Assembly (NCBI RefSeq): GCF_023055435.1
Contig: NW_025963802.1
Location: 36,642,001 to 36,706,000 of the forward strand
Length of the DNA stretch: 64,000 nt
Reading direction: 5' to 3'
Source: Haliotis rufescens
Lineage: Eukaryota
The notes under the pieces are model-generated. The model did no database searches. It had not been told where the DNA came from and worked only from the letters and a program-made list of their open reading frames with translations. A program made the translations under genes and the position numbers. Positions 37,185-62,579 of the stretch are shown one piece after another; within the stretch, counting starts at the first letter, position 1; each line of letters opens with the position of its first letter.

Positions 37185-37650
37185 ATAATCCACCTAATCC
37201 AGATCAATCTGACTACGATACACCTTAATCCCGCTAGCTGGGGAATCCGTGCCCAAAGTGTGTCCCAATAAAATACCGCGTTCCGCCAGTTAAAACAAAT
37301 TGTCCTTAATTGTCATTCAGCTGACGACTAGAACGATCTTAACCATGTATTGTGCAAACACGGGTGCACGGTACATTTGATGTCCTACCTGGTGATTACG
37401 CCGAGATAATCCCTCTCACACTTCGTATAGGTCGCTAAATATCCACTGGACGCACAAGCGATAGTACTTTCACACCAAGCCCAAGATCACTATTATAATA
37501 TTTTGTTTATCTTTGTTTCCGTTACCAAGTATATCCAATGTGAGATCAATTCGTTACTGAATCGATCAACGAGTGCTGCCTTTGTTATGTAAATATGTTG
37601 TTTTAGAAAGATATATAAACATTGGATAGGACAGATTCAGTATCATTCTC
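37185..37650 (+). promoter_or_regulatory. Conserved cdc25 promoter module (copy 1)
   Basis: TAATCC at 37186, 37195, 37226 and 37407; TAATTGTCA at 37307; CTTTGTT at 37580; TATATAAA at 37612; TCATTC Inr-like at 37643. Blocks are collinear upstream of all five copies. Confidence 0.7.
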
Positions 37651-37731: not shown

Positions 37732-40121
37732 ATGTCAAGAAAACAGCTGAAGGTAAGAATAACAGATGTATTCCGTTGACTCAATTTAAAATTTTCATGG
37801 AGTATTACGTTTACATTTATCATGAGTGAGTGAGTTTGTTTTAACGCCGCCGTATTCCAGTTATATCACTGCGTGTCGGCTTCATGTAGGAGGAAAGTCC
37901 GAAATGATGCAGGTCTAAGACATTTACCACATTGGTGAAACCCACGAGCATGGTTTGGTACTGACAAACCAAGAAACATAATTATGGCGAACCAATTTCG
38001 AACTCACGACATCTTGTACGTCTATAGGACGAATTGCGGTGCCATAGACGACTGGGGCACCAATGTCACAGGGAATGTGACATGTGGCAGGGAAAAGAAC
38101 AATTTGCATTACGCATTTATTCTGCTTCATTTCAGTTTTGCATGGAACCTTCCCTATTTGAGGATTTAACAACCTCTGGTGATGTGTGCATGAGTTCGCC
38201 GGATGTCTTCATACCAAAGAGCCTCGATTTCGACGAAGAAGATTCAAATGATAGCGGCTTTGAATCTATGAGCAGCGACAATGAGGTATGTTCATCTTGG
38301 TAAATCCTTCTTTCCTTGTTCGTTGTCACACCGATGCAGTTAGTTGGGTTTTACGCCGCTTTTAGCAATATCCAAGCAATATAACGGCGGGGGACAACAG
38401 ATATCGGCCACTTTGTAGCTATGTGGTGAATCGAACACACCCTTCGGCGTGACGAGTGAACGCCTCGACCACAAGGCTGCACCATCGCCCCTCGACGATG
38501 CAGGAACTTGAGCAGGTTGTGACTGTTGGGAACTGACCTAATCCTGGCTTATAAGCTTGTATACATATATTGGAACTTATCTCTTATCAGGTATCTCCTC
38601 TGGCATTGGATCATAAGACAAGGAATGGTTTCCATGGCACCAGGAGATCGCTCTTCTCGGGCAAGAGATCACGTGAAGAGGACGCTGAAGGTCACGCTGT
38701 TTGGCAGGTCAAGAAACTTCGATCACCCAAAATTTCCGACAAAGCCCAAGCTGAAGTGACGTCCATTGTTATGAAGACAGCCGTCGATAAAATGCAAAAC
38801 GATACAGGTCTTATTGGCGATGGCTCAAAGGTTAGTTGAAACAAATTCTTATCCAAATCAATTGAATAACGGTTAAATTAATCATTTTGGGGATTAATAC
38901 CGACTAACAATAATCTCATTTCAAGTAAATAACAGTTCTCTTTTGCATTTCAGGTTCATAGTCTCCCAACTATACAAGGACGACACAAGGATCTCAGTTC
39001 TGTGGCTCCACAAACAGTTAGTAAACTTCTGGCAGGAGACTACGAAGACATCATTTCCAGCTACAGGATCATCGACTGTCGTTACCCGTATGAATATGAA
39101 GGGGGTCACATTGAGGTATGCTATTGTCTTCATCAGGGATGAGATAAATGCTACTATAGCTCGGGTGTATATGTGGACGTTCATATAATGATTCCTTATA
39201 TATCAGCTTTTTTAATATTCCGAATTTATAGTTTGCCAATTTGTTTACTTACAGGGAGCGGAGAACCTTCACAACGAGGCTCTGATCACAGACTTAGTGA
39301 CCAGTCTACAGGGGAGGGACTCCACTCAACGGAACATCCTGGTCTTCCACTGTGAATTTTCATCAGAGAGAGGCCCAAAGCTGTAAGCATTTGCCACATC
39401 ACTTGAGGCAACTGATTCTAAACGACACTAAGCAAATTTAATAAATAAATATTGCTGTTACATTTATCCTGTATTAAAGTTGTCTATGAATAATAATTAC
39501 AAGTACAACTTTCATTCATCGTGGTTTCCCATCATACAGATTGCGCCATCTGAGAAACCTTGACCGGAAGCTGAACAGTGACCGTTACCCTTTCCTCTTC
39601 TACCCGGAAGTGTACCTGTTAGATGGCGGATACAAGACCTTCTATGAACAACATGAGGTAGGTTAATGCACTTATTACATACTTTGATATTCAAATGTGA
39701 GCATGTTCTTATGTCAATATGTTAGTCTACTTTATTCAGGAGTATGTGTTGACAACAAAATGTATGTATTAGTCTATGCATTATTTCTAATTTGTCTTAT
39801 AGGGTGCCCAACCTACATCAATTCAACAATATAGGCATACAATCGTACTGACATTGAAATATCTTTTCACTATTGATTTTTGTTGAACATTAATGTTTTA
39901 TCAATCTACATATTCCAAATGTTTCTAACAGATTCCTTTCATCATTTTGTTAGTGTCAGTGCGAACCAAGATCCTACCTTCCCATGCTGCATCAAGATTA
40001 CTCCAAACAACTACGTCAGTTCCGGGTTCAATCAAAGTCATGGACAGCAGGACAGAAACAGAGCATGCGCAGTCGGCGTTTCCAAATGGATGCGTCTCCA
40101 CTCAAGTTATCTTTATGGTAA
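37732..40121 (+). CDS. cdc25: Cdc25 (M-phase inducer) phosphatase, copy 1, 7 exons, 328 aa
   Basis: Exons 37732-37752, 38136-38285, 38591-38830, 38954-39115, 39255-39382, 39540-39657, 39954-40121. Motifs: [27 protein letters not shown], catalytic [49 protein letters not shown] at 40309. Confidence 0.95.
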
Positions 40122-43100
40122 AAGATGAACTGCTCACGCAAAGAACTAAATGTTGTTCTTGTTCTTGTTGAACTATGTTGCAGACGTTGTTGAAGCTAGT
40201 GCCGATATGTTGCAATTGCGGAAGACTGATTATATATTGTGACCTGCTGTGTTAAGGTCATCAACTATTCTGTGATATTCTTTTGTTAATCCATTATTGT
40301 TTCATGTGAATAAATTCCACACATACAATTCTTTGTCATTATCTCTCCACTCTTGCTTGTCACCATTACAATCCTAGCCTCGTAATATTATTTTATCTGT
40401 ATGGTTTTATAAATCGATAAGGCCGGGTGAAATGATCTCATGACTGTATCATGTAAATGTGTGTATGAATCACTATCAACTAGTGATGATACCAGGTGTT
40501 CGTGAAAAGGTTAACATATCTTGCAACACCTGTGACATACGTCATAAACACTTGCAAACATTAAAGGCAAGTCAACTGTCTACAATGGCACATTACGAAA
40601 TTTGCTTTGGACTTAATAAAAACCGATCACATGTTCATAATAACTTTAAATCATGAAAGAAAGTTCGATTACCTTATAGTCATGTGGTTGATAATAGGCG
40701 AGGGAGTTAATATATAACGACACAGCAACAAACTTTCATCAAAATATTAGCAGAGGATCCATTAAATGTGAGTTCTCATCCCAGATGTGGTACATTGCAT
40801 ACACATTCACTGTTCCCTCAATGTTGTCCATTTGTTAACATATAACAGTGATTAGCTAAAATAAGGAAATCATGTTAATTGGCATATGTGCAATTAAATA
40901 TTCGTATTTTGTATCTAATAGTAAGAATGAACAAGACACTTTTCATTAAAATTTACATTGTCGCATGTACCAGTTCCAACACCTTAAAAGTACAAAATGT
41001 AGATTATGAGAAATTTTATTGATGAAAAATTTACAGTAAAAACAATTGTAATTGAATGATAGTTAGCATTTTAGCCACTAACCACAAGCTTTACTTTAAA
41101 TGGTAACACATTCTCCTGCCGGTTCGACTGTCACCACTCAATGAAGCACTGATGACTTCAGCGAATATCTGGGATCATCACTATTTGATAGTGATTCATA
41201 AACACATGCTCCTGATATAGTCGGATAAGTACAATTGACTCTGCTTTTGGCAGAGTTTTCTTATGAATATAGAAAGGATTTTGTTGCTTTTATTCATACA
41301 AATGAAACTAAGGTGAATGTACACATAGTCTTTTATTTTACTTTTATGGGGCCAGATAAAACTTTTGATGTGTCTGATTAAACATTCCCTATGTGCTACC
41401 TATTCCATGAAGATAGTTGAGTAATAATTAATGCATTGTGTTACAAGCATTCAGTGTGATCCATATGTTCACTGAACCTAACGCTATACATGAAGTTATA
41501 TATCATTACACAATGGGAGATATGATACTGCTTACATCGACGAACAACACTCCTCATACACTCATAAATATAAACATCGGGAGGAACAATCATTAAGAAG
41601 ATAAACATACTGTATTTGCAATGTAGAGCTGGATTAACTTTAATCGCGCTAAATTGAAATTGAAACCGAACGCGAAGCCATGACTTTATGAAATGCGAAG
41701 CCTCTGGTGTTCATCTGAGTGAAGCGACATTGGTCGAGTCCAATGTTTTGAATGGGTTGTCAGTCTGACTCACGGAATCACAGACAACTGCTTTTACACA
41801 AAATATGGCGCTGTTTATGCTCAAGCTGTTCTCTGCAGCGTAATACTTCACTCGGGCATTAAATTTAATGGCAGGCATTGACAGCATGTAGCACAGCAAC
41901 TTCGTACGCTAATATGATGTGGGCACTCCTAAAGAAAACTAAGCAAGCCTTGCAAAGGTTTCCTTCTTCACCGCACATCACTATTATTTCCTCACCGTGA
42001 GGCAAAAGATATGACGTCACAGTCTTATGTAGAAAAGCGTCAAAATCCAAGCTATCTGTCATCCCCAGAACTTGAAATACATTCTCTTGGTAGGTTTCTA
42101 TCGTGTATTCTGCACAAAAAGTATTGCCACACATCCTTTGAATATTGCAGTATCCGCAACTTTGCATTTTGTAACCTATAGTTATTTAGTAGTTAGTACA
42201 CATAATTATTTACATATGCCTACTGACAATGACTAAACAAGAAGTATTAGCTTCCGTGTCAAATCGCCTGTTATTGCGATTAATTTCCAAATTCATGAGA
42301 CAATAACGATTATCCCCCGAAATCGATTCCATTAGTCCTAAAAGGCAAAATAGTGGTGAAAAGTATCTGAATGGATCACCGAAAATCAGTGTTGACACTG
42401 GGTGCTCGCGAAAAAGGTAAACATATCATGTCCTACCTGTAGAATGACATTAAGTATGTCACTCTTTATTGTGAATAGTAATACGTTGCAGACATACATG
42501 TAGTGTTCTTCCTTAGTTTAAACAATGCTACTTGGACTGACACATCATAGATGTCAAATAAGGTGAACTGTATAAAATTAAACTTTTTTCGATTTCTTTG
42601 GAAAATGCATTAATATGAGACAAATTACTATCACCGTCTAGCTTTCCTATAAAAACAAAACAGGTCAACGATTAGATGTCCTGATCTTTGAAATATGCTT
42701 CCATGTATATTCATGTGATACCATGCAATTCCCTTTGTTGACTTGAACCATACGTACCCGTGTTTTCTCGGGTAAACAAGTTGATCTGCCCCTGCATGTG
42801 TTTGTGACGGTGCCATCGGTGAACCCTATCATCACTATTTGATAGTGATTCATAAACAGAGGATTACGAAAATGTCGGAATCGTACAATGGACTCTACTT
42901 TCAATAGAGATTACTTATCATTATGGAAAGGGTACATGATCATTATATTTCTATGCGAACGAGACGAAACCTATTATTCTGATATGTTTGACACAGGAAT
43001 AGACATGATATAAACATACTTATTTCCATTAAGTGGAGGGATTGGCAACCAAGCAAAGTTTGCTAATCTGAATGCCTCTCCCAAACATGATACACATACA

Positions 43101-43274
43101 AATTACAATGTATTGAAAGTGACATAAGAGATAGCATACATTATATAATTGACAGCAAAGATAAGTATTGTTCTGTAAGTGTTTAATTACTGGATTATCT
43201 TTCGTAACTACAGCTACGTTATTATTTACATCCAGCACAACAACATCGCAGTATCATATAGCAAAGCCAACATC

Positions 43275-43585
43275 TCAGACAAAATCTCTAAATTGGCAAG
43301 AAGATCGAATAAAACTGTGCACTGATTTCAAAATTTCAAGATTTGTTACAGTCGTTAAATGTAAATTACCATTTAGAATTGAATTTAAATCGTAGCCTTT
43401 TACGAAATAATACATATCTTGCCTTAATGTACTGTTTAAGGGACACGTAAGGAAGAAATGAAGTGCATCTTCCGTATGATAGCCACAACAACATCTCGCG
43501 CTGTCGGAAATAAATCTGGCAAATTTGTCGGAGTTAAGATCACTGCAGCCAAGCCTGAGACGGGAGTGTATAACCTGACAGAATA
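43275..43585 (-). mobile_element. LINE ORF2 C-terminal (CCHC) fragment, CR1-group-like
   Basis: HSRLRLGCSDLN...CCCGYHTEDALHFFLTCP...R...ILNG...N..I...V..FI. Confidence 0.7.
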
Positions 43586-44344
43586 TTGATCCATAATTTA
43601 CATCAAAGTATACACCATTGTTATAATATAGACATGGTATGGAACATGCAACAGAAACGAGAAAGTACAATTTCCACATGTCAAAACAGCATTAAATATT
43701 ATCACACAAACAAAAGTTCAACCCACCTCAATAGCATCCACATTAACTGTAAAATTGAACATTATCAACACTTTTTATTATACAATATCACAAATATCTC
43801 TATATTATTATTTTATGTACTTTGTCCTTCGAATGGCTCAAGTTTAATTGGGTCGGTGGGGTTCAATGTGTGAAGCTTATTTCTGGTGTCACCCGCCGTG
43901 ATATTGCTGGCATATTGCTAAAAGCGGCGTAAAACCATACTCACTCACTCCAGTTTTATTTAATGTGAACGTGATGTGTACTTAGGTTCTTCACGCCGAA
44001 CTACCGAGTTCACTCACTCACCCATTATTTACCTCAACATGTAGTTCAAAGGCAAAACAAATATTTTGTAGTTATATAAATCACGCCATCCTTCGAGTAA
44101 ACGCAAAAAAAACTGTTAGATAAACATAAGTTTCTATAATAACGTGATACTTCAATTTGTTCAGAAAACCGAGATAAAGCTTTACAAGAAATTCCATATA
44201 TCTGCGTATAACAATGGCAATTCTTTATGACTCTTTCAAGGTTATAATCACATGAAACCAATATGAAATACAAAACAATTATTGTTTCACAGAATTTGAG
44301 TGAACATCCATCCAACCATTCAGTCGTTTTCTACAAGGGTGGGT

Positions 44345-44830
44345 CTAATCGAGCTAATCCAGATCATCCTAACAACCGCTTGATAAATCTGCTTACTTTA
44401 CACCTTAACCCAGCCAGTGGGGAATCCACGCAGAAAGTGTGCCCGTATTAAATATCTTGTTCCCAAAGTAAATACAAATTGTCCTTAATTGTCATCCAAC
44501 TGACGACCAAAACTATTTGAATTCTGTGTTATCAACACATGGGCTACCGGTACGTCTCATGTCCAACCCGGTGATTAAACCCGGATAATCCCCCTCACAC
44601 CCTTGTATGGGTGGTTCCATATCTACGGGGGACGCAAGCGATCGTACATTCACACCAAGCCCGACTTAGTATTATGTTAGTGTTTAACTATGTTTTCATT
44701 AGCCATTATGAATAAAGTACGGTTAAGTGGATAATGAACCGATTAACGAGTGTTTTCTTTGTTATGTTACTATGTTGTTTTAGTACAGGTATATAAACAC
44801 GAGAATGCACAGATATTGAATCATTCGACT
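44345..44830 (+). promoter_or_regulatory. Conserved cdc25 promoter module (copy 2)
   Basis: Same order of blocks: CTAATCCAGATC, GGGAATCC, TTAATTGTCAT, GATAATCCC, CAAGCG..CACACCAAGC, CTTTGTTATG, TATATAAA, TCATTC. Confidence 0.7.
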
Positions 44831-44900
44831 TCAAACTGTTAAACTGTCCAACTTACATTTCTTACTATTATTGAAACAATTTGAAAATACTTGTGTCATA

Positions 44901-47295
44901 ATGTCACGAAGGCAGATGACGGTAAGTAATAACATGCTTCTTATTTTCATAATCAGTAAAATTTTTATAAGGATGAAGAATATATATATTTATATATTAT
45001 ATTTTTGTCTTGTCTTTTCAGTTTTCCAGTGACCTGTCAAATAACCTTGAATGCCCGACTTCACCGGAAGACTCCATCAAACAGAGTCTGGTTTTCGAAG
45101 ATGAAACCTCTCGAGATAGTGGCTTTGAATCTCTTGGCAGTGACAGCGAGGTTTGTTACATTTCATTTAACACCATGGGCAGTTCTTATTTGCAGAAATA
45201 CATAGGTATATCAATATACTATCCTGTAAATGCTTGAAACAAAATTAAAAAATATTTGCCAGAAATATCCAATAAATATTATAAATAAATAGCTATATTC
45301 ATAAAAAAATGTCTAATCCAAATAAAACATGTGATGATATGTTTCTTTATCAGGTGTCGCCACTACCTTTGGATCATAGGAGGACTGGTTTCCATGGAAC
45401 GAGGAAATCCCTTTTCGGAGAAAAGAGACGACGTGATGATGATGGTGCTGAAGATCATATTCTAGCTCGGCAGATGAAGAAACTTAAAACAACCAATGGT
45501 ATCCACAAAGCCCAAACAGAAGTCACGTCAGAGGTTATGAAGACAGCCGTTGACAAAATGGAACAAGGGACTGATCTCATCGGTGATGGCTCACAGGTTA
45601 GTTGGAGGCTGATGGCTTCTTATTTATCAATCGAATAAAAAATGCATGCTGATTTTGAAGATGACGAGGTAACTGGAAAACAACTTCACATTTAAATCAA
45701 TATCGAAATTATTTCTTTTCCAGAATCATGGTCTTCCAACTATTCAAGGAAGACACAAGGATCTCAAGTCCTTGGCTCCACACACAGTCAGTCAGCTTCT
45801 GGCAGGACAGTACGATGACGTCATATCCAGCTTCAGGATCATCGACTGTCGTTACCCATATGAATATGAAGGTGGTCATATTGAGGTATGCTACTGTCTT
45901 TAAACTCCCTCAAAACAATTCAATCATGACCATGTAATATTGTTCATGGGCTATGTTTATACCATATTAACAACATATTGATTGTATCTTTCTTAATATC
46001 TCGTGACCGCCTCCGTGGTCTAGTGGTAGAGCATCCACCCGGAGAGCGGAAGCTCAGGGGTTCGATCCCCGGGCGTCATACCAAAAGACGTTAAAAGATG
46101 GTACTTGTTGTTATCCTGTCTGGCGCTCGGACTAAAACAAGGACTGGTCGGCACGGAGTCAGTACACTGTGTCTGAGTGGGGTATTCATGTTAATCTGCG
46201 GCAAGGTATCTCAGTGAGCTAGCACTATAAATCGGCATCAGCCGGACAAGTACAAGCAGCCACACACACACACACACGTGCATGCACGTCACAAGTGCAA
46301 TAATCTTGGACGTGACGTTAAACCCAATTTCACCTCACCTCACCTTCATATCTCTAAAAATCTAAGTTTACAGTTTACTTCAGGGTGCCTAGCATGCAGT
46401 AACAGTCTGAGTTTACATTTTACTTATTATTTACTTCAGAGTGCCGAGAACCTTCACAACGAGGCTCTGATCACAGACTTGGTGACCAGTCTACAAGGGA
46501 GGGACTCCACTCAACGGAACATCCTGGTCTTCCACTGTGAATTTTCATCAGAGAGAGGCCCGAAACTGTAAGTATTTTTGTTACATCACTTACTTGAGGC
46601 ACTTAACGATACTTACATAACGATAAAGATGCTTAGTTTCAATGAAAACTAAAACGAACATGTATATCTCAGCCTCTCGTTTTAATACGGCTTCTCTTTT
46701 ACAGATTGCGCTGCCTCAGAAACCTTGACCGGAAGCTGAACAGTGACCGTTACCCTTTCCTCTTCTACCCGGAAGTATACCTGTTAGATGGCGGATACAA
46801 GGCCTTTTATGAACAACATCGGGTAAGTTGATTGACACTTGATGCGGATTTAATAACTGAATACGAATATATATGCGTGACACATGTTTTGCTGATTACG
46901 TTATCTTTATAACTACTCTCAGTGTAATACAAGAACGTGTAGTGTCTATGATCTTACCAACCTACATCAATACAACAATTGATGAATACATTCTTGTTGA
47001 CATTGATATCGTTTTGAAAATTTGAGAAATATTTCTTTGTCACTATTTATCATTTTTGTTGAAAAGTGGATAATGTTCTATCTCAACATTATGAAATCTG
47101 TCTAACAGTGTATCGTCATCATTTTTCCAGTGTCAGTGTGAACCAAAAAGCTATCTTCCCATGCTGCATCAGGATTACTCCAAACAACTACGTCACTTCC
47201 GGGTAAAGTCCAAGTCATGGACAGCAGGAGAGAAACAGAACATGCGCAGTCGACGTCTTCAAATTGATGTGTCACCACTCAAGTTATCTCTATAG
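44901..47295 (+). CDS. cdc25: Cdc25 phosphatase, copy 2, 7 exons, 321 aa
   Basis: Exons 44901-44921, 45022-45150, 45354-45596, 45724-45885, 46440-46567, 46705-46822, 47131-47295. Intact HCEFSSER and [13 protein letters not shown]. Confidence 0.95.
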
Positions 47296-48689
47296 CAATG
47301 TGGAAAATATTCTTACGTGTACTATTTTTCCTGACTGTTGGTGCTGTTGAAGTTGTTAACATATATTACTGATGCTGTTGATGTTAGTGTCTGCTTGTTA
47401 TGGCAATCCATGACATTCATTTTTGACCTGCCGTGTTAAGGTCAACAAGCCCCACTGTGATACCAAATATTGTTTCATGTCAATAAATATCAAACTTTTA
47501 GTTCATTGAATGTCCTCATTTCTTTCCACTCTTTGGGTGCACGGGTGACCCGGACGGCCTAGGTGCTGCAATTTGATGTGCATAGTTGCGTCCTTTAGAC
47601 GTGCAAGAATTCAATAATCGTGGGTTTGATCTCAGCTTAGCACTGGTTATATTTCTAGCTTTATCAGCACCATGTCGTGCACGTGTTAAACGTCTAAGTC
47701 CTTGAAATACTGTAAACTAAACACACTCACTCTTGACACTAGTTTAACCATCGCTTTAACCACTAGGCTACCCTATTGGATAAGGGGCAGTCGAGTAGCC
47801 TTGTGGTTAAAGCGTTCGCTCGTCACGCCGAAGACCCGTTTCCGATTCCCGACATGGGTACAATGTGTGAAGCCCATTTCAGGTGTCCACTGCCCGACAT
47901 TCCTGGAATATTGCTAAAAGCGGCGTAAAACCATACTCATTCACTCATATTGGACAAGGAGGTGTACAGAAGTTGGGATCGATTCAAGCAAAGGTACAAC
48001 GTGTGAATTCATTTCTGACGCCCCCATCTTCTACATGTGGAGTAAATTTCTAAATTTGATGCATCAGTGACAAAACTTATGTCCGATTCAACTCCCTATT
48101 TTGACATGCACCATATGTTCCCGCTTTTTTCTTCAGGTGTGCAATTGACTTGCCCTCGCGTGTGTTACGGGTGCCACCGGTAGAGCAGGATACTCTCATC
48201 TTTTCGCTAACACCTCGTATCATCGCTGTTTGATAGTGGTTCATGCTCATGATATAGTCGGAATCGTGCTATGAACTCTGCTTTGAGGGACAGATCATAT
48301 TATATTTTCGGAGGTGTGTGTGGGGGCGGGTGGTGGGGGTGGTGGGGGGTGGGGGGAGGGGGGGTGGGTCTTGAGGCGCAATGAATATTTTTCAGCTGCA
48401 GCTGCAAAACCAGAAGAAAAAAATTAATTACAACTATGAGCCCATTACAAAGTACTTTCAAAAAATATCTTGCAACAAAGTATTTTTTTGTGTTCGGCAA
48501 TTTTGGGGGGTTTCAACACTCTGAAGCATAATTATCTTTTGAACGATATTTCTGCGACAATTTATTTTTTGTCGTTAATCAAATCCCAACCACTTGTCTT
48601 TTTTTATTTGTTAAATTGTATATTGTTATTGATAATCTATTCATAATCTTTATGTAAAGATTCCCCTTCCCTTGCTAAAATGTGCTTAC

Positions 48690-49412
48690 TTCGTACTTTA
48701 ACCCAGCTACCTTGAGTCTCAAGTAGAGAATTTCTCGGTAATATATTTCTGTTCTTTCAGTGAATACAAATCTTCTTAATTGACATTGTCAGCTGGCGAT
48801 GTACACCCTGCTAAATACCCTGTAGTGCTGGTAAGTTTATGTCTTAACGAGGTGATTAACACAGGATAATCTCTCACACCTTGGTATATATAGCTAATAT
48901 CCACTGGACGCACAAGCGATCGTTCTTTCACAGAAGAAGAAGAAGAAAATTATTTTATTTTCGTGTCACACACTGTACAGCAGTGACAATAAAAATACAT
49001 AAATAGTGTGTACAGTGTCCGGCCATTATGGCCTACGAGACACGCAGGACGTCACATACATATAAGTAAAAATGAGAAATATCACAGCACATACATATAC
49101 ATAAAAATGAGTTATCACCAGTTATCACAGTACATACATATACATAAAAATGAGTTATCACCGGTTATCGCCAGTTATCAGAACATTCTGATACTAAGAT
49201 ACATGGAACTAGGCTGGTAGAGACGAAAGACACAGTTGTCTTCGCTCATACATGTGGTGAAGAAGCGCGGCTAGGGGTCTGACCACCTTATTGTTCCGCA
49301 TAAAGAACCAAGCCCACATAGTTGGCGGATCACTTTAATGTTTATCTTAGCCAGTAGAAAAGAATAAACAACCAACTGGGCAATGAATTGATCAACGAGT
49401 GTTGTCTTTGTG
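48690..49412 (+). promoter_or_regulatory. Orphan copy of the cdc25 promoter module, split by an insertion (~48932-49305)
   Basis: GGTGATTAAC..GATAATC..CACACC..ATATCCACTGGACGCACAAGCGAT..TTTCACA / CCAAGCCC..GATCAACGAGTG..CTTTGT. No cdc25 exon follows. Confidence 0.65.
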
Positions 49413-50763: not shown

Positions 50764-51758
50764 CTATAGAGATAACTTGAGAGGGGATACATCTATTTGA
50801 AGACGTCGACTGCGCATGTTCTGTTTCTCTCCTGCTGTCCATGACTTGGACTTTACCCGGAAGTGACGTAGTTGTTTGGAGTAATCCTGATGCAGCATGG
50901 GAAGATAGCTTTTTGGTTCACACTGACACTGGAAAAATGATGATTTCATAATGTTGAAATAGAACATTATCCACTTTCAACAAAAATGATAAATAGTGAA
51001 AAAGAAATATTTCTCAAATTTTCAAAACGATATCAATGTCAACAAGAATGTATTCATCAATTGTTGTATTGATGTAGGTTGGTAAGATCATAGACAATAC
51101 ACGTTCTTGTATTACACTGAGAGTAGTTATAAAGATAACGTAATCAGCAAAACATGTGTCACGCATATATACTCGTATTCAGTTATTAAATCCGCATCAA
51201 GTGTCAATCAACTTACCCGATGTTGTTCATAAAAGGCCTTGTATCCGCCATCTAACAGGTAGACTTCCGGGTAGAAGAGGAAAGGGTAACGGTCACTGTT
51301 CAGCTTCCGGTCAAGGTTTCTGAGGCAGCGCAATCTGTATCAGAGAAGCCGTTTTAAAACGAGAGGCCTTAGATTTTCATGGTCTTTTTACTTTCCATTT
51401 AAACTAAGCATCGTTGTCGTAATGTAAGAATCGTTAAATGCCTCAAGTAAGTGATGTGACAAAAATACTTACAGTTTCGGGCCTCTCTCTGATGAAAATT
51501 CACAGTGGAAGACCAGGATGTTTCGTTGAGTGGAGTCCCTCCCTTGTAGGCTGGTCATCAAGTCTGTGATCAGAGCCTCGTTGTGAAGGTTCTCGGCACT
51601 CTGAAGTAAATAATCAGTAAAATGTAAACTTAGACTGTTACTGCATGCTAGGCACCCTGAAGTAAACTGTAAACTTAGATTTTTAGAGATATGAAGGTGA
51701 GGTGAGGTGAAATTGGGTTTAACGTCACGTCCCAGATTATTGCACTTGTGACGTGCAT

Positions 51759-51842
<84 letters not shown>

Positions 51843-53203
51843 CTGCTTGTACTTGTCCGGCTGATGCCGATTTATAGTGCTAGCTCACTGAGATACCTTG
51901 CTGCAGATTAACATGAATACCCCACTCAGACACAGTGTACTGACTCCGTGCCGACCAGTCCTTGTTTTAGTCAGAGCGTTAGACAGGATAACAACAAGTA
52001 CCATCTTTTAACGTCTTTTGGTATGACGCCCGGGGATCGAACCCCTGACCTTCCGCTCTCCGGGTGGATGCTCTACCACTAGACCACAGAGGCGGTCACG
52101 AGATATTAAGAAAGATACAATCAATATGTTGTTAATATGGTATAAACATAGCCCATGAACAATATTACATGGTCATGATTGAATTGTTTTGAGGGAGTTT
52201 AAAGACAGTAGCATACCTCAATATGACCACCTTCATATTCATATGGGTAACGACAGTCGATGATCCTGAAGCTGGATATGACGTCATCGTACTGTCCTGC
52301 CAGAAGCTGACTGACTGTGTGTGGAGCCACGGACTTGAGATCCTTGTGTCTTCCTTGAATAGTTGGAAGACCATGATTCTGGAAAAGAAATAATTTCGAT
52401 ATTGATTTAAATGTGAAGTTGTTTTCCAGTTACCTCGTCATCTTCAAAATCAGCATGCATTTTTTATTCGATTGATAAATAAGAAGCCATCAGCCTCCAA
52501 CTAACCTGTGAGCCATCACCGATGAGATCAGTCCCTTGTTCCATTTTGTCAACGGCTGTCTTCACAACCTGTGAAGTGACTTCTGTTTGGGCTTTGTGGA
52601 TACCATTGGTTGTTTTAAGTTTCTTCATCTGCCGAGATAGAATATGATATTCATCGTCATCGTCATCACGTCGTCTCTTCTGTCCGAAAAGAGATTTCCT
52701 CGTTCCATGTAAACCAGTTCTCCTATGATCCAAAGGTAGTGGCGACACCTGATAAAGAAACATAGCATCAGTTGTTTTATTTTGATTAGAATAATGTTTA
52801 AGAATATACATATGTCTGTCAAATATTCATTTTGCTTGCTTCAATCATTTACAGTATAGTATTTATATACCTAGTATTTCTGCAAATAAAAACTGCCCAT
52901 AGTGTTAAATGAAATGTAACAAACCTCGATGTCACTGCCAAGAGATTCAAAGCCACTGTCTAGAGAGTTGTCATCATCGAAAACAAGGCTCTTCTTGATG
53001 AAAACTTCCGGTGAAGTCGGACACTCAAGGTTATTTGACGGGTCACTGGAAAACTGAAAAGAAATATTTTTCATATGATTGCTTTCATCCTTAATTTGTT
53101 TCTTATTATGATTAAATGAACATAAGAAGTCGGTCTTATGGTTGTGAAACACGTCAAAATGTTACAATACATAAATACTTACCGAGAGTTGCCTTCTTGA
53201 CAT
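50764..53203 (-). CDS. cdc25: Cdc25 phosphatase, copy 3, 7 exons, 321 aa (inverted near-duplicate of copy 2)
   Basis: Exons 53203-53183, 53053-52925, 52748-52506, 52378-52217, 51600-51473, 51334-51217, 50928-50764. Catalytic motifs intact. Confidence 0.95.
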
Positions 53204-53259
53204 TATGTCACAAGTATAATAATAGTAAGAAATGTAAGTTGGACAGTTGAACAGTTTGA

Positions 53260-53750
53260 AGGCGAATGACAAAATGTCTGTGCACTCTCCTGTTTAATAT
53301 ATACCTGTGCAAAAAGAACACATTAGCATAACAAAGAAAACATTTGTTAATCGGTTCATTATTCATTTAACCGTACTTTATTCATAATGGCTAATGAAAA
53401 CATAGTTAAACGCTAACACAGTAAGAAAGTGCGCTTGGTGTGAATGTACGATCGCTTGTGTCCCCCGTAGATATGGAGCCGCCCATACGAGGGTGTGAGG
53501 GGGATTATCCCGGGGTAATCACAAGGTAGGACATCAAATGTGCCGGTGGTCCATGTATTGATAACGCAGAATTCAAGTAGGTTTTGTCGTCAGTTGAATG
53601 ACAATTAGGGACAATTTGTATTTACTTTGGGAACAAGATATTTAATACGGGCAGTTTTTACGTGGATTCCCCACTGGCTGGGTTAAGGTGTAAAGTAAGC
53701 AGGTTTATCAAGAGTATGTTAGGACGATCTGGATTACCTGGATTAGAATC
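53260..53750 (-). promoter_or_regulatory. Conserved cdc25 promoter module (copy 3)
   Basis: Reverse-complement copy of the module. GGATTA at 53502, 53731 and 53740. Confidence 0.7.
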
Positions 53751-53974
53751 ATGCTTGAAACTGAAATTAAGTAGCACAGTGAAGTGTTTTGTATTTCATA
53801 TTGGTTTCATGTTCTATTTCAGCTTTAGAAGAGACAGTGTCGTTATAAACTGACATGTTTGTTGTGTTATGTCTTAATTTAGGTTTCCTACACCTGTTAT
53901 CACATTGTTTCATTTGTGTTTATCAGTGTTTACTTACAAACTTGTATGGCAACTATGTGGCTTCCTTCCGAACT

Positions 53975-54011
<37 letters not shown>

Positions 54012-54020
54012 TGAGAGAGT

Positions 54021-54062
<42 letters not shown>

Positions 54063-54864
54063 AGGGAGAAAGACAGATACAATTACAATCATTTTAATGT
54101 GATTTTATTGAGAAGTTCAGGCATCGTTCAACTGCAGTGCTTGCAGATACCTGTTTTATTTGTATCTCAACTCTTGTGTTACATTTAGAAACACAACATA
54201 CATCGCATTCACATCAGAAGAACAGGAACCATACAAAGGAAAACGTTCATAAATATACAATATTAATTATGATAGGAGTGTGTTGCATAGAGAAATTTCC
54301 AATATACATGTAGTTGAATATAAAAGTGTTGATGATATATAATAGTTTATAAGCATCATGCACGTGGGTCCTATTGAGATGGTTGAACGTGCGTCCTTGA
54401 AATAGTATTTAAAAGCTGTTTTGAAAGACGGTAATTGTATATTCTTGCGTCTGTGGCATGTTTCACGCCATGTCTATGTCTATTTCGGAAACAAAAATAC
54501 ATGAAGAATATGTTCGTAAGAAAAATGATGTTACAACATGTCCTAAAGGGTCAGGGAGTATAGTTCTAATACTACTGTTATCCTATTGCAGCCATATCAA
54601 AATCGTCCTAAACATTCACAAAGGTCCTCACAATTCTAGTATTACATTTAGATACAAAGCATACATCGCATTCACATTTGAAGAACTGGAGTTACTCAAA
54701 GGAACACAGGCTTAAACCTAATACTTCATACACTATATAACTTTAAGCAGATATTGTTTACGCTTATGGAAATGGTTTTGACACTTTTTTATTTATTAAA
54801 CTGTGTATGGATATTGACAATCTATTCTGGTGCATCTTCTTTATTCTAATATTTAGAACCTTCT

Positions 54865-55190
54865 ACTTCGCACCTTAACCCCTCCCTTGGGCTTCATGCA
54901 GAAAGTGTATATGTATACAGTAAAATATCTTTCTTAAGTGACATTAAGCTAACGATCTAAACCCTGCATTATCCTATATTATATCGGTACATTTGATGGC
55001 TAACTTGGATGATTACCAGACCTTAATCCCTCACACCTTGTTATATGTAGCTAATATCCACTGGACGCACAAGCGATAGTACTTTCACACAAAGCCCACA
55101 TTGTTGTCGGGTCGCTTAATGTGTTAATGTTTATCTTCGTTTTCATTTGACAGTAGAAAACAATGTACGCTCAATTGGGCAATGAGCTTA
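54865..55190 (+). promoter_or_regulatory. Second orphan copy of the cdc25 promoter module
   Basis: CACCTTAACCC, CGGTACATTTGATG, TTAATCCCTCACACC and ATATCCACTGGACGCACAAGCGATAGTACTTTCACAC (the last identical to copy 1). No exon downstream. Confidence 0.65.
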
Positions 55191-55540
55191 TACAACAAAA
55201 ATGACATCATTCACCTACTATCTATTTGGTCCATTACAAAACCTATTTGAAGAATCTATTCAATAACGTGAAGAAGTCAGCTTTCCCTTTACGGACATCA
55301 TATCTAAAGTATAGGTTTGTTTATCAGTTGTTATCAATAATATATGTCTTTGTCTGATCAAGAATAATGTTCACAGTATTACCGAAAAGCATAAACATAA
55401 ATCTTATAATATGAAAAAATACTTACATTTTTCAATTCAGTTTTCCATGGGGGAAAAGTCGGGGAAACTGTCTTTGAGACTTTTTGCAGTGATAGCGAGA
55501 ATTGAAAAGTTTCATATTATAACAAATGAATGAATGTGTG

Positions 55541-55587
<47 letters not shown>

Positions 55588-55866
55588 CTGCGTGCCTGCG
55601 TGCGTGCGTGCGTGCGTGCGTGCCAGCGTTGCTGCTAGTACTAGTCCGGACTGATGCCGATTTATAGCACTAGCACACTGAGGTACCATGCCGCATGAAT
55701 ACCCAAGTCAGACACAGTATACCGACCAGTCCTTGATTTAGTCCCTCAATGCCGAGCGCCAGACAGGGTAACACCAGGTACCATCTTTTAACGTCTTTTG
55801 GTATGACGTGGCCGGGGATCGAACCACTGACCTTCCTTCCGCTATCCGGGCGGACCCTCTACCCCT

Positions 55867-56029
55867 NNNNNNNNNNNNNNNNNNNNNNNNNNNNNNNNNN
55901 NNNNNNNNNNNNNNNNNNNNNNNNNNNNNNNNNNNNNNNNNNNNNNNNNNNNNNNNNNNNNNNNNNNNNNNNNNNNNNNNNNNNNNNNNNNNNNNNNNNN
56001 NNNNNNNNNNNNNNNNNNNNNNNNNNNNN
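55867..56029. other. Assembly gap (N run)
   Basis: N bases. Confidence 1.
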
Positions 56030-57299
56030 GTGTTGAGGTATGAGTTATGACAATTTACAGGCTGTTTGTTGCTTTGTTACCATGTTGTGATGCATAAGTG
56101 TTATATATGATGATTCCATGTGAATGTTCTCATGTCTAATAATAGAAACAATTTCTGAAACAAATTATATTTGTAACTTCTTCTAAAACAGTGCCATCGA
56201 TGATCACAACCTAAGAGCCTAAGTAATGAGGATCGGTAGTGACAGCGTGTGACCTGACCAAGTAGGAGTCGTAGAACCCCGACGTGCCCCTGACACTGCC
56301 GTATTCTAGCTACCTGACTGTGTGATGAAACACCATTCCCTCACTCACTCATTGATACTGTGAAAAATGACTGACTGACAACTTCCTTGTATTACAGATA
56401 CAAGAGTGAAAAATACATTGATGATATTACAGTGATATTTACGGGTTCCGGGTATCTTAGATATCTTTTATTTCTAAATAAATAAATTTGCTTTTTTCGG
56501 AAAATAATTACAACATTTCAAACAATGTAGGGGTCACGTGGTTGCAAATTCATTTCTTACCCAAGTCTCCATTGAACCAATTTATGTTCACTCACAATTA
56601 TCAAGCTACAGATTAATTTTACATACAGTTGCAGGATACGGAATGAGCGATGCTTAAAAAAGACATAATTAAATATAACTAATTCTTTCAATTTTCAGTG
56701 ACAAATCAGTTTTATCAATATGCTCAACGGTTAATGTGAAAGCTTGGATATTTACATATAAAGTAAAGGTATGATAGTAGAATGTATGTGATACGATTTC
56801 GGTATCCAGTTTGTGTATCTTACTAAATATTTGACATTTCGATTATTATTTATACAAATCTGGTCATCACGCACTCATATATTATGACAGTCATCAAACG
56901 GTAAAGTGTTTCAGTGCCATTGACAAAATGTAAGAACATCATTTTGAGAAGTTTACCTCGCATAATTATTATAACAACAAACGCTTCTCATTTTCGACCA
57001 CATCCCTCCAAACTTAAAACTTGCAAGATCGTGCAGGGTTTGGAACGGTGACAAACCATGAATACAAAAACGTATTTATTAAGAGCATGTCTTTAAGACG
57101 TTCCTCAACAAACCATCTCGTATGTCACTTCACAGACAATAATGTAAAGATTGTTGTTGTTGCTGCTGTTGTTGTTGTTGTGCACCTGATTATTACTTTA
57201 CATAGAATTTCTCATAATAGAATGTTTAATTTTCTTTTTATGAATAATTTAAAGGGTCAGATTGTGCTGGGTTTGGAACTGTGACAAACCATGAATACA

Positions 57300-57920
57300 A
57301 AAACGTATTGATTAAAAGCAGGTCTTTAAGACGTTCCTCAACAAACCATCAAACCATATTTGGAAATGTCCTCCACATATCTTCCATAATACTGTTTGAA
57401 AGCTTTTCTAAGGCTTTGAATGTTGAATATCAGATCATGGACATACTTGAAGCCTATGTTAAACTACTTGGCCAGATTCCCTTGTTTTGACTTTACCAAT
57501 CCGAGCTGATAATTTCTTATTCATATGCATAAAAAAACATAATAACAAGAAGGGGATGACAGTTGGTGCCCATTGAGATGCCTTCTTCTTGCCTTAATGT
57601 TGTATCTCCAATTTTTACATAGATATTATCAATGTAGAAGTCAAGCATTTCACGAATTGTCTTCTCAGTAAACTTCGGACGGCATTTGCTTTCATTTTTG
57701 ACAAACTACCCCGAACCTTAAGAAATAGAGATACAACTGTAAACATGGAAAAAGATTCAAGGAATGAATTTTTCGTTAAGTTTGTGATGTGGGATAGTTG
57801 TGTTGTTGAAAACTCAATTGTTTTGACAGAATTGAACTTTGTTTTTTTCTGAGATTAGAAACATTCAAGTAAATACGTCGAGTATTTGTTAATCCACATG
57901 GTATTAATTCCTAAAATACT
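57300..57920 (-). mobile_element. Decayed Penelope-like reverse transcriptase fragment
   Basis: Minus strand encodes GISMGTNCHPL (RT motif B) and an upstream WI.K.S..LL / VKTIEFST-like segment, with frameshifts. Confidence 0.55.
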
Positions 57921-58280
57921 TTCTGCACAAATAAAGAAAGCCCTTCCTTGATTATATTAAGGATTCCGGTTAAACTTCGAGAGATATATTCGGTGGTAGA
58001 GTTTCTGGATCCAATCATGTATTTCGCTCCGTACAGGTATGTATGGAACATTTATAAAGAAATAAAGGAGAATGAACAAATTGTAAGTCAGTATTTATTT
58101 TTATTGTACGAATGTTGTATCACAGAGTGGGTGGTAAAACAGATCAACATATGTGTAAAGTATTCAGTTATTGCCTCAACATTCAGGCACCAAAACAACA
58201 ATAACAATAGCCTTAAATAAGTCCCTCAAAACCGATGGTCCGGTAGTATCTGAAATCTGATTCATCATTTCATCTTCAGA

Positions 58281-59987
58281 TTACCAAAGAGGCATCTTGA
58301 GCGGAGACGTGTCTATTATGAGACTTCGACTGCGCATGTTCTGTTTCTCTCCTGCTGTCCACGACTTGGACTTCACCCGGAAGTGACGTAGTTGTTTGGA
58401 GTAATCCTGGTGTAGCATGGGAACATAGCTTCTTGGTTGACACTGAGTCTGAAATAGAGTTGTAAAGACACATTATTACATAACATTTTACAAAAAAGTA
58501 GTACAGTACAAATAACTCTGCTTTATTAAAATATATACGAAAAACGTTTACATGTACACTAAATATAGACATATTTATCTTTCCCGAAAAGGGACTCCCG
58601 TCAGTTTCAAACGTTTCTCAGCCTACCTGATGTTGTTCATAGAAGGCCTTGTATCCGCCATCTAACAGGTATACTTCCGGGTAGAAGAGGAAAGGGTAAC
58701 GGTCACTGTTCATCTTCCGGTCAAGGTTTCTAAGATGGCGCAATCTGTATCAGAAGATACATCACTGAATGAAACGTTGCATAAGAAAATGATAATTACT
58801 TTCGATGTCATTAGTATTTTACATCGTGCAATAAACGTATAAACCGGTTCACATATATTTGAAGTTGTTTATATCAACCACTTTTATGAAATACTTACAG
58901 TTTCGGGCCTCTCTCTGATGAAAATTCACAGTGGAAGACCAGGATGTTCCGTTGAATGGAGTCCCTCGCCCGTAGATTGGTCACTAAATCTGTGATCAGA
59001 GCCTCGTTGTGAAGGTTCTGGGCACCCTGAAGTTGAAAAATAGCAGTATTTAGATTACAGACCTTAAGAATGTTGGTCTCTGCCATTGTAGATTTGTTTA
59101 TAATGTGTAAGATCGCCACACCAATATTAAAAAAGGAGTTGAATATATTTGTGATATTTGGGACATTTTACCTCAATATGTCCGCCTTCATATTCATAGG
59201 GGTAACGACAGTCGATGATTTGGTAACCGGAAATGACGTCATCATATTTTCCAGCAAGAAGTTGACTGACTGTGTGTGGAGACACAGATTTGAGATCCTT
59301 GTGTCTGCCTCGTATGGTTGGGAGACTATGAATCTAAAACATAAGGAAAACTTCATAATAACTTGAATAATAAATTAATGCTATTTATATGTCTATGTGA
59401 TAGAAATGTTAACAAAATGATGAATGTCCTTATTATTGCAATTAATTAGGCAATTCAGAACCGCTTAATAATCGACATGAGAATGGAATAATAAACCTTC
59501 TACAAACCTGTGAACCATCACCGATCAGGTCAACCTCATTTTGCATTTTGTCCACAGCTGTTTTCATAACTTCTGACGTTAATTCTACTTGGGTTTCATG
59601 GACAACGTAGGCGGATTTGTGTTTCTTCATCTGCTGAGCTTGAACGTGTTCGTCATTTTCATCATCATAATCACGTGGTCTCTTTCCCGTGAAAAGCGAC
59701 TTCCTTGTGCCATGAAAACTAGTTTTCATGTGAGCCAAAGATTGGGGAGACACCTGAAGAAAAAAACATATATTGCCTTTAATTTTCTAAATAACTGTCT
59801 TTCCTTTCTTTGTTTATATCTTTCTATCTGTCGTATAGATTTTAAAAAAAGCGCGATATATTATTCAACACACCTCGTCGTCACTGCAGAGAGAGTCAAA
59901 GCCGCTATCTCGTGAGTCTTCATCATCGAAAACTAGGCTTTGGGGTTTGAAAACCTCCAGTAAACTCTGACGTTGCTTTCTAGACAT
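58281..59987 (-). CDS. cdc25: Cdc25 phosphatase, copy 4, 6 exons, 311 aa (no intron 1)
   Basis: Exons 59987-59874 (MSRKQRQ...DSGFDS..), 59753-59508, 59333-59172, 59026-58899, 58744-58627, 58448-58281. Intact HCEFSSER. Confidence 0.93.
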
Positions 59988-60059
59988 TGTCGTGAACAAA
60001 TAATTTCAACAGGGATAGGAAAATGTATCTAGTATCTTGTGTTTGCTATTTAGACAGCT

Positions 60060-60570
60060 GTCAAGCGAATGGTGCTATGTCTGTCCTCTCTCATATCTAT
60101 ATACCTTTACTAAAACAACATATTTACATAACAAAGACAACACTCGTTGATCGATTCTTTACCCAATTGATCGTACATTGTTTATATTGGTTAATGGAAG
60201 CAGTATAAACATTCACACATTAAAGGAGATCGGTTAAGTATTGTAGGCTTGGTGTGAATGTGCGTTCGCTTGTGTCCACCGCAGATACGTAGATACCTGT
60301 ACGGTGAGAAGGGATTATCCTGGGACAATTATAATCATCCAGGAAGAACTTCAAATTAGCGGTAGACAATGTTTGGATAACGTCGGACGCAGGTCGTGCT
60401 GGTCGTCAGTTGAATGACAATTAAGGCCAGTTTAATTTGTTGTAACTTCGCGAACGCGATATTAATGCCGGAGCACTTTCTATGTGGATTCCCATCTAGC
60501 TAGGTTAATGTGTTAAATAAGAAAGCTTTGTCAGAGGACAGTTAGGATGATCTGGATTAGATGGATTATG
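60060..60570 (-). promoter_or_regulatory. Conserved cdc25 promoter module (copy 4)
   Basis: Reverse-complement copy. GGATTA at 60312, 60554 and 60563; ATGACAATTAA; CATAACAAAG. Confidence 0.65.
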
Positions 60571-61303
60571 TGCTTGTTGAAAGCGCATTAATCGTTATAT
60601 GGTCATTAACATAAACAAGGTAATTCTAGTTATTTACTGGATTGTAAAATATTGTGTGTAACCAGATACTCCGAAAGAGGTAGTCATGCCCTGCTCTACC
60701 GGTTTCACCAGTAATAGGAGATGGAGATATTGTCTTTGTTTTAGTGTAGAGTTATGTTGACGGTATACGTACTAAGATGATTATCAATCGAACACGCATT
60801 GTGATGTTTCAAATGTCTGTTTTAGAGGTGCATTCGGTTGAAAAAATGCTGTCACAACGTAAAGGTGAGCGATCTCCATCGAAAACGCAGAATCATGATA
60901 ACTATTCTACTTTTAAAAACTTAAATGTTAAGTCTAATGTTACCAGGGTTCTGATCTAATTTAAGGAATCGTCGATCACATTCTATTTATAGTGGAATTT
61001 GTACCCAAACAACGTTGTCGTCATGCAAGTGGCTAATGGATACTTCTTGAGAAATAACGTCAAGGGAGGTTTAGGTCTCAAGCACATCACTATAATCACG
61101 TGACAATATTCTACTTTTGCAATGGGCTGCAAAGGAAAAGGCCAAATTTAAAACTAAATAATCTCTCAATGTCGGTTGTCATGGTATTTTGTGTCCAGAT
61201 TATACTGCCATCTATAGTTTAGTTTTCATTTAAACTGAGCATCGTTATCGTAATGTAAGAATTGTTAAGTGCTTCAAGTAAGTGATGTGACAAATACACT
61301 TAC

Positions 61304-62579
61304 AGTTTCGGGCCTCTCTCTGATGAAAATTCACAGTGGAAGACCATGATGTTCCGTTGAGTGGAGTCCCTCCTCTGTAGACTGGTCGCTAAGTCTGTGA
61401 TCAGAGTCTCGTTGTGAAGGTTCTCGGCACCCTGAAGTAAATAATAAGTAAAATGTAGACTTAGACTGTTACTGTATCTTAGGCAACCTGAAGTAAAATG
61501 TAAACTTAGATTTTAAGAGATATTAAGAAAGATACAATCAATATGTTGTTAATATGGTATAAACATAGCCTATGAACAATATTACATGGCCATGATTGAA
61601 TTGTTTTGAAGGAGTTTAAAGACAGTAGCATACCTCAATATGACCACCTTCATATGCATATGGGTAACGACAGTCGATGATCCTGAAGCTGGAAATGACG
61701 TCATCGTACTGTCTTGCCAGAAGCTGACTAACTGTGTGTGGAGCCACGGTTTCTGGAAAAGAAATAATTTCGATATTGATTTAAATGTATAGTTGTTTTC
61801 CAGTTACCTCGTCATCTTCAAAATCAGCGTGCAATTTACTTATTTGATTGATGATAAGAAGCCATCAGCCTCCAACAAACCTTGGAGCCATCACCGATGA
61901 CATCAGTCCCTTGTTCCATTTTGTCGACGGCTGTCTTCATAACCTCTGACGTGACTTCTGTTTGGGCTTTGTGGACACCATTGGTTGTTTTAAATTTCTT
62001 CACCTACCGAGCTAGAATATGATCTTCAGCACCATCGTCATCACGTCGTCTCTTTTCTCCGAAAAGGGATTTCCTTGTTCCATGGAAACCAGTCCTCCTG
62101 TGATCCAAAGGTAGTGGCGACACCTGATAAAGAAACATATCCCACCAAATGTTTTATTTGGATTAGACTTTTTTTATGAATATAGATATTTCTGGCAAAT
62201 ATTATATTTTGTTTCAAGCATTTACAGGATAGTATATTGATATACCTAAGTATTTCTGCAAATAAAAACTGCCCATAGTGTTAAATGAAATGTAACAAAC
62301 CTCGCTATCACTGCCAAGAGATTCAAAGCCACTATCTCGAGAGTTGTCTTCATCGAAAACTAGGCTCTGCTTGATAAAGATTTCGGGTGAAGTCGGACAC
62401 TCAAGGTTATTTGACAGGTCACTGGAAAACTGAAAAGAACTATTTTTCATATGATTGTTTTCATCCTTTAATTGTTTCTTATTATGATTAAATGAACATA
62501 AGAAGTCGGTCTTTTGGTTGTGAAACAAGTCAAAATGTTATTATAAATTAATACTTACCGAGAGCTGCCTTCTTGACAT
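61304..62579 (-). pseudogene. cdc25: Cdc25 pseudogene, copy 5
   Basis: Exons 62579-62559, 62429-62301, 62123-61881 (CAG>TAG nonsense at 62006-62004), 61752-61634 (119 nt vs 162 nt, frameshifting deletion), 61431-61304. Exons 6-7 are absent; homology stops at ~61215. Confidence 0.9.

Follow-up and report, generated by a model that had tools for sequence, protein, structure and literature searches.

The DNA studied here, which we call the window, is a stretch of 64,000 nucleotides from the red abalone, Haliotis rufescens, placed at C24:36,642,001-36,706,000 by searching the entire assembly, translated in six frames, with one of the exons described below (exon C). It carries five copies of a gene for Cdc25, a dose-sensitive trigger of mitosis and meiosis for which the standard model animals have two to four dispersed genes. 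The active-site sequence HCEFSSER, written as a degenerate DNA pattern, has exactly five matches in the window, at 39348 and 46533 on the forward strand and at 51485, 58911, and 61316 on the reverse strand, against 0.05 expected from shuffled sequence. The active-site loop, H-C-X5-R, reads HCEFSSER in 5 of 5 copies and is in frame in the first four (c1 to c4). A preliminary description of the region had proposed five homologous genes in the order + + - - -, with four intact copies and one pseudogene (c5), and both the active-site matches and the spliced gene models bear this out; the interval it gave, 37732-62579, begins at the ATG of c1 and ends at that of c5. It had also credited four copies with complete open reading frames (ORFs), which is true of c1 to c4 once their exons are spliced but of none of the five copies as a single continuous ORF, each copy being a spliced gene with GT-AG introns. 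Very probably, the five genes make up the proximal end of a true array, tandem and inverted, of active short ("mini") Cdc25 genes.

Gene structures were established from six-frame reading, from tblastn searches with the copies' own exons, and from a DNA alignment of the five copies, and the structure common to them consists of seven coding exons, named 1, A, B, C, D, E, and F. The spliced models were searched exon by exon, full-length searches used database proteins identical to the models, and the joined coding sequences were used locally for alignment, for the ratio of nonsynonymous to synonymous divergence (dN/dS), and for the tree. The first copy, c1 (37732-40121, forward strand), is intact and has seven exons (37732-37752, 38136-38285, 38591-38830, 38954-39115, 39255-39382, 39540-39657, and 39954-40121) that encode 328 amino acids (aa); its model is identical to RefSeq XP_046358408.2. 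The second, c2 (44901-47295, forward strand), is likewise intact, with seven exons (44901-44921, 45022-45150, 45354-45596, 45724-45885, 46440-46567, 46705-46822, and 47131-47295) and 321 aa, and matches RefSeq XP_048249706.1 without a difference. Its inverted partner, c3 (50764-53203, reverse strand), is also intact and encodes 321 aa in seven exons (53203-53183, 53053-52925, 52748-52506, 52378-52217, 51600-51473, 51334-51217, and 50928-50764), with a model identical to RefSeq XP_046358406.2. The two belong to an inverted duplication whose arms, 45013-47773 and 53062-50328, are 89.6%-93.4% identical. The intact copy c4 (58281-59987, reverse strand; 311 aa) has only six exons (59987-59874, 59753-59508, 59333-59172, 59026-58899, 58744-58627, and 58448-58281), the first coding intron having gone by an imprecise intron loss that fused the 21-nucleotide exon 1 to exon A. 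Residues 101-311 of c4 are RefSeq XP_046358404.2 (211 aa), and its closest paralog, with a synonymous divergence (dS) of 0.067, is a copy outside the window (c7).

The fifth copy, c5 (61304-62579, reverse strand), is a truncated pseudogene. Exon 1 (62579-62559), exon A (62429-62301), exon B (62123-61881), a remnant of exon C (61752-61634), and exon D (61431-61304) are recognizable, but exon B carries a TAG at 62006-62004 and exon C is frameshifted, with a 43-nucleotide deletion at the exon start. Homology to the intact copies stops about 95 nucleotides into the intron that follows exon D, and exons E and F are absent.

Similarity among the copies extends beyond the coding exons. A 5' flanking module of about 0.5 kb lies upstream of c2 (44344-44872, forward strand), and self-BLAST finds a counterpart at every other copy, at 37202-37621 (c1), 53747-53218 (c3), 60568-60049 (c4), and 63308-63059 (c5), the upstream regions being 73%-90% identical to one another; the module may act as a promoter. 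Further, the RefSeq models of c4 and of six copies outside the window (c7 and c9 to c13) either start at an internal methionine (211 aa) or run into the next gene (267-268 aa). The upstream coding exons that these models omit show in-frame conservation among the copies and occur in one model of the black abalone, Haliotis cracherodii; the short models look like truncations of the annotation. A practical point follows, namely that annotation pipelines apparently truncate several of these Cdc25 genes.

The 14-locus array and the abalone Cdc25 complement

When the neighboring DNA is modeled as well, the array that starts with c1 comprises 14 loci in about 94 kb. The preliminary description was right about the genes that it counted, but its cluster of five is an artifact of the window edge, because the array continues to 14 loci and the genome holds still more. 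Eleven of the 14 loci (c1 to c4, c6, c7, and c9 to c13) are intact and three (c5, c8, and a degenerate c14) are broken, with two isolated last-exon fragments alongside them. In c8 (C24:36,722,580-36,724,460), exons A, B, C, and F are open and most of E is present; exon D, with the active site, is absent, and the locus is presumably a catalytically dead pseudogene or variant. The distal part of the array, from c8 to c13, consists of regular, directly repeated units, each about 9 kb long and 88%-99% identical to one another, and some of these copies share 99% identity over 4.6 kb. The part inside the window, with the c2/c3 inverted duplication, is older and rearranged. Across all copies, the positions and phases of the introns are conserved (six or five introns per copy), and the upstream modules and intergenic DNA were duplicated together with the genes. 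Introns that have been kept, and exon boundaries held in common with the canonical Cdc25 gene described below, point to duplication at the level of DNA, and an origin of the copies as retrocopies was rejected on the same grounds.

The array is one part of a large gene complement. About 25 Cdc25 loci were found on C24, at least 21 of them apparently intact. They include a cluster of four short genes at 5.21-5.24 Mb; a cluster of four short genes and one fragment at 2.51-2.54 Mb; and two divergent single genes at 36.874 Mb and 36.887 Mb. One gene of the 2.5-Mb cluster, the second, has an active-site exon (C24:2,522,171-2,522,296) that reads ...ILVFH*EFSSERAPKL, with a stop exactly at the codon of the catalytic cysteine. 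The preliminary description had suggested a search for a separate, canonical long Cdc25, and such a gene lies at C24:29,402,800-29,410,700, where its coding exons, at least 11 in number, are spread across more than 8 kb; it aligns collinearly with molluscan proteins of 486-548 aa that carry the N-terminal M-inducer_phosp region (PF06617). Its catalytic exons are homologous to those of the short copies, whose B/C, C/D, D/E, and E/F boundaries all recur in it. However, the long gene is single-copy and has an additional intron inside exon C, which the arrayed copies have lost.

A second and much larger array lies on C57, where head-to-tail units with a period of about 2.64 kb occupy 18,492,852-19,084,388. 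We characterized it from one 10-kb sample and two whole-genome match tables. Each unit in the 10 kb sampled contains a five-exon, stop-free Cdc25 gene of 332 aa. The second exon (100 aa) has 236 candidate matches in the whole genome, and all 150 of the 150 that were scored are full-length, stop-free, and 97%-100% identical; dividing the span by the period gives about 225 units. The encoded protein is just 50%-58% identical to any other protein compared. A satellite-like array of a cell-cycle regulator merits a study of its own.

To place the copies, we built a maximum-likelihood tree of 87 catalytic-region sequences by a quick search, with support from the Shimodaira-Hasegawa-like approximate likelihood ratio test (SH-aLRT); the sequences from outside Haliotis came from the gastropods Gigantopelta, Patella, and Lottia and from bivalves. 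Long forms separate from all short forms (SH-aLRT 99), and all arrayed short copies from C24 fall in a clade made up of Haliotis sequences only (SH-aLRT 98). Within it, c1 has one-to-one orthologs in H. cracherodii (98% identical), Haliotis rubra, and Haliotis asinina (SH-aLRT 99); c2 and c3 cluster with two H. cracherodii genes (98), c4 and c7 with two others (99), c6 with one, and c9 to c13 with six. H. asinina and H. rubra also have species-specific clades of their own. Collinearity was judged from accession order together with the tree, and by this measure the H. cracherodii accessions XP_071089149, 089151-156, 089158-160, and 089162-164 are the mirror image of the gene order in red abalone, which means that an independent assembly of another species reproduces the array. 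In H. asinina, more than 20 accessions follow one another without a break. Within Haliotis, the array is an ancestral feature. The phylogeny and the comparison of gene order were both steps that the preliminary description had suggested, and its proposal of a lineage-specific birth-and-death expansion turns out to have been an understatement, given a Haliotis-only clade in which intact genes, pseudogenes, and fragments stand side by side and dS between duplicates ranges from 0.06 to more than 0.7.

These comparisons also bear on whether the copies are real. Tandem paralogs can be produced by an assembly in which haplotypes were left uncollapsed or the repeats of one or two genes were misassembled, and two observations could be read in this way: there is an assembly gap (a run of N at 55867-56029) inside the cluster, and certain more distal copies match at 99% identity over 4.6 kb. 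The window copies, however, differ from one another by 7%-25% in DNA and also in the content and length of their introns and in orientation, c2 and c3 being mutually inverted and c4 being without an intron that c1 to c3 have. The dS between copies, 0.06-0.37, is far above the level we would expect of haplotypes, and each lineage has its own ortholog, in collinear order, in the independent H. cracherodii assembly. The gap itself is intergenic and belongs to no gene. It lies between c3 and c4, at distances of 2.66 kb from the 5' end of c3 (53203) and 2.25 kb from the 3' end of c4 (58281), and no Cdc25 exon match occurs within 2.2 kb on either side, so it affects no gene model, whether or not the flanks really adjoin each other. 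On its left side lies a dispersed repeat that looks like a tRNA-derived short interspersed element (SINE). With this divergence, the c2/c3 inversion, and the orthology between species, we rejected uncollapsed haplotypes, and an assembly artifact of either kind is extremely improbable.

Protein family and molluscan context

Membership of the Cdc25 family is indicated by several kinds of comparison. Exons C, D, and F each match solely human Cdc25A/B/C among solved structures. Exon C of c4, searched against a library of 1.84 billion proteins, retrieves abalone proteins named "M-phase inducer phosphatase-like [Haliotis rufescens]." A phmmer search of full-length c1 against the PDB returns chains of Cdc25C, Cdc25B, and Cdc25A exclusively (E-values from 4e-55 to 8e-47, residues 122-313), with 4e-55 for the catalytic domain of human Cdc25C, and the score for the Pfam Rhodanese domain (PF00581), 44-46 bits, exceeds the cut-off of 22.2. 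On single exons, Pfam finds just a sub-threshold Rhodanese match in exon C, a test that is nearly blind at this length. The AlphaFold model of c1 has a predicted local distance difference test score of 85-96 over most of residues 120-280, and residues 1-106 are predicted to be disordered. Its top 14 PDB matches are all Cdc25A/B/C (14 of 14), with template modeling scores, normalized to the target, of 0.79-0.88 across the 14 and 0.84-0.88 for the match of the confidently modeled catalytic domain to Cdc25B/A/C. With the active-site loop, a rhodanese fold that includes the Cdc25 C-terminal helix, and collinear homology over the whole domain, the abalone copies are, by sequence and predicted fold, members of the Cdc25 family of dual-specificity phosphatases.

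Conservation within the domain is extensive. Across 39 molluscan homologs, 42 columns are invariant, among them C224, E225, S227, S228, and R230; R236, R239, D242, R243, Y250, and P251 are also the same in 39 of 39. The segment that follows the active site aligns with human Cdc25C, and we take it to correspond to the segment of Cdc25B that holds the remote substrate-docking residues R488, R492, and Y497. By our own reading of the alignment, the remote substrate-docking region therefore appears to be conserved in the abalone copies. Outside the catalytic domain, all intact copies have the same N-terminal motifs, comprising a DSGFES-type motif in an acidic context, HGTRKSLF, basic patches, and a block that ends in DLIGDGS.

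The N terminus also separates the copies from canonical Cdc25. PF06617 has no match in c1, c2, c3, c6, or the two single paralogs, whereas a long-form molluscan homolog of 486 aa does match it; judged by sequence, the window copies are of a short subtype, not of the long canonical one. Compared with human Cdc25A/B/C, the catalytic domain is 46%-50% identical, with the same fold and the same HCEFSSER loop, and the abalone N terminus has a putative DSG-type degron, as that of human Cdc25A does. The human proteins have about 470-580 aa, and their three genes are dispersed. In contrast, the abalone proteins have 311-328 aa, are without PF06617, and are encoded in tandem. Paralogs specific to a lineage are also found in Drosophila (string and twine) and Caenorhabditis elegans (cdc-25.1 to cdc-25.4), some of them serving germline meiosis or embryonic cycles, but these are two to four dispersed genes, against 14 loci in one array and about 225 copies in another, besides further clusters, in abalone.

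Short Cdc25 genes are also widespread in other mollusks. The search with c1 gave 2933 proteins with E-values of 1e-20 or less, and the 120 listed are almost all molluscan. Among these listed matches, many distinct clusters of short (about 290-350 aa) Cdc25-like proteins per species occur in Mytilus, Mya, Argopecten, Pecten, Dreissena, Mercenaria, Patella, Lottia, and oysters. They resemble the abalone proteins in length, in having a Rhodanese domain only, and in the number of distinct copies per species, and some of the genes are adjacent, for example in Tegillarca. The Haliotis copies on C24 nevertheless form their own clade, and they look more numerous and more densely packed. A study that mentions, in passing, seven CDC25 genes in Crassostrea gigas also reports, from a microarray, six CDC25 probes more abundant in spawned clam oocytes (PMC4254928). 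The premise of the preliminary description that Cdc25 is usually low in copy number and not densely arrayed thus fails for mollusks, given the many short clusters per species and the seven genes of C. gigas. In the protobranch Solemya velum, the gene model KAL5006213.1 (581 aa) contains three repeats of the Cdc25 catalytic domain; the gene predictor has probably fused a tandem array here, and if so, tandem Cdc25 arrays also exist in protobranch bivalves. As to the novelty of the abalone array, the genes have already been annotated by NCBI ("M-phase inducer phosphatase-like") and the arrangement is an ancestral one within the genus, but our literature searches found no paper describing a Cdc25 expansion in abalone or mollusks, and the expansion itself has apparently not been described in print.

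Selection and possible roles of the copies

The copies are under purifying selection. Pairwise Nei-Gojobori estimates of dN/dS lie at 0.2-0.3 in the catalytic exons; those for exon B are 0.17-0.64 (mostly 0.2-0.45), and this holds even at dS above 0.3. Synonymous divergence is distributed unevenly along the genes: within the array, dS is 0.09-0.33 in exons D and E versus 0.65-1.9 in exon B, whereas between arrays exons D and E reach 0.4-1.1. Because dS in these two exons is low within the array and high between arrays, the pattern fits local gene conversion better than constraint on synonymous sites.

It is conceivable that most of the copies are recent, nonfunctional duplicates that have not yet decayed, and that the canonical gene and a few paralogs do the work. 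Such a situation would account for the three broken loci among the 14 (c5, c8, and c14) and for the copy in the 2.5-Mb cluster that has a stop at its catalytic cysteine codon. It does not sit well with the low dN/dS among copies that are already well diverged at synonymous sites, or with c1, which has remained intact from before its lineage parted from those of H. asinina and H. rubra. The N-terminal motifs, moreover, persist in all intact copies, and the residues of the catalytic core that are invariant in the 39 molluscan homologs have all been kept. We therefore regard loss of function in most of the copies as improbable, and prefer to view the intact loci as active genes.

Our preferred account of such active genes is as follows. 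The copies arose by segmental duplication at the DNA level, carrying along introns at the positions of the canonical gene, and the array turns over by birth and death while its catalytic exons are partly homogenized by gene conversion. Each intact copy encodes a disordered N-terminal region of about 110 residues, with a putative phosphodegron (the DSGFES-type motif), the RKSLF motif, and basic patches, followed by a complete catalytic domain. The proteins are predicted to activate the cyclin-dependent kinases CDK1/2 by removing the inhibitory phosphates of pT14 and pY15, and may be turned over through SCF-beta-TrCP. The high copy number could provide dosage, or a supply at particular stages, for meiotic resumption and early cleavage, with copy number and N-terminal diversification tuning dose or timing and the long canonical Cdc25 serving ordinary cell cycles. 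By analogy, a role in the germline or early embryo is plausible.

A different division of labor would be one in which the short paralogs have acquired new functions, acting on other substrates or as decoys or regulators (for example, in the control of proliferation during stress or immune responses), and in which the long gene alone drives the cell cycle. The PF06617 region is missing from the short forms, which are an old molluscan lineage apart from the long form (the split with support of 99), and they have expanded repeatedly in many mollusks, a pattern that in our judgment is associated with families that face the environment. Nevertheless, the catalytic domain is conserved, including the region that aligns with the docking residues of Cdc25B; the DSGFES degron-like motif, typical of Cdc25A regulation, has been kept; and multiple Cdc25 transcripts are associated with oocytes in a clam (PMC4254928). 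Neofunctionalization of this kind is, in our estimation, quite unlikely.

Several points weigh against our preferred reading, in which the window holds the proximal end of an array of active short Cdc25 genes. These genes are known here from their sequences, and their catalytic activity and specificity for CDKs are deduced from conservation. A dN/dS of 0.2-0.3 is consistent with function but silent on which function. The germline or embryonic role is argued from analogy with the bivalve microarray study, and the upstream coding exons of c4, c7, and c9 to c13 from their conservation. Finally, a search with exon B of c1 (80 aa) found no short database proteins, a result of little weight because the candidates were limited to proteins of 44-140 aa.

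With about 25 loci on C24 and about 225 copies on C57, abalone possibly have the largest Cdc25 complement of any animal known to us. A tentative and rather speculative extension is that the arrays are a gene-dosage system similar to those of histones or ribosomal DNA, which would provide oocytes and early embryos with a store of CDK activator to be used in meiotic resumption and rapid cleavage and would be kept homogeneous by gene conversion, the window copies then being the older, diversifying end. The five-copy cluster is modest when taken by itself; what makes it interesting is how large a family it is part of. An array of 14 loci that is conserved, under purifying selection, and partly homogenized makes Cdc25 copy number itself an evolving trait in abalone, and the database matches suggest that it may likewise evolve across mollusks. 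If the copies should be specific to the germline or embryo, they would offer a natural system for studying how thresholds of CDK activation are set in broadcast spawners, as well as markers for oocyte competence in abalone aquaculture.

Repeats and other features around the copies

Little other than Cdc25 genes is encoded in the array. Between c1 and c2 there is an ORF of 134 aa (43275-43679, reverse strand) with a cysteine-rich tail, which to us recalls the C terminus of a reverse transcriptase from a long interspersed element (LINE); presumably it is a retroelement fragment. No other long ORF was found within the array. Carriage of the Cdc25 genes as cargo of a mobile element was considered and rejected, since the array has no transposase-like ORF of at least 130 aa and contains only this LINE-like fragment and short repeats. 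A dispersed repeat family of about 280 bp, probably a SINE, has copies with 81%-94% identity at 1586-1857, 10396-10673, 15217-15519, 17978-18261, 22573-22855, 31922-32233, and 37807-38015, and one copy sits in the first intron of c1. The window has a second assembly gap at 21448-21661. Three long minisatellites lie upstream of the Cdc25 array, at 14003-15061, 19354-20810, and 7231-7672, with periods of about 36, 76, and 31 nucleotides, respectively, and repeats that are 87%-97% identical.

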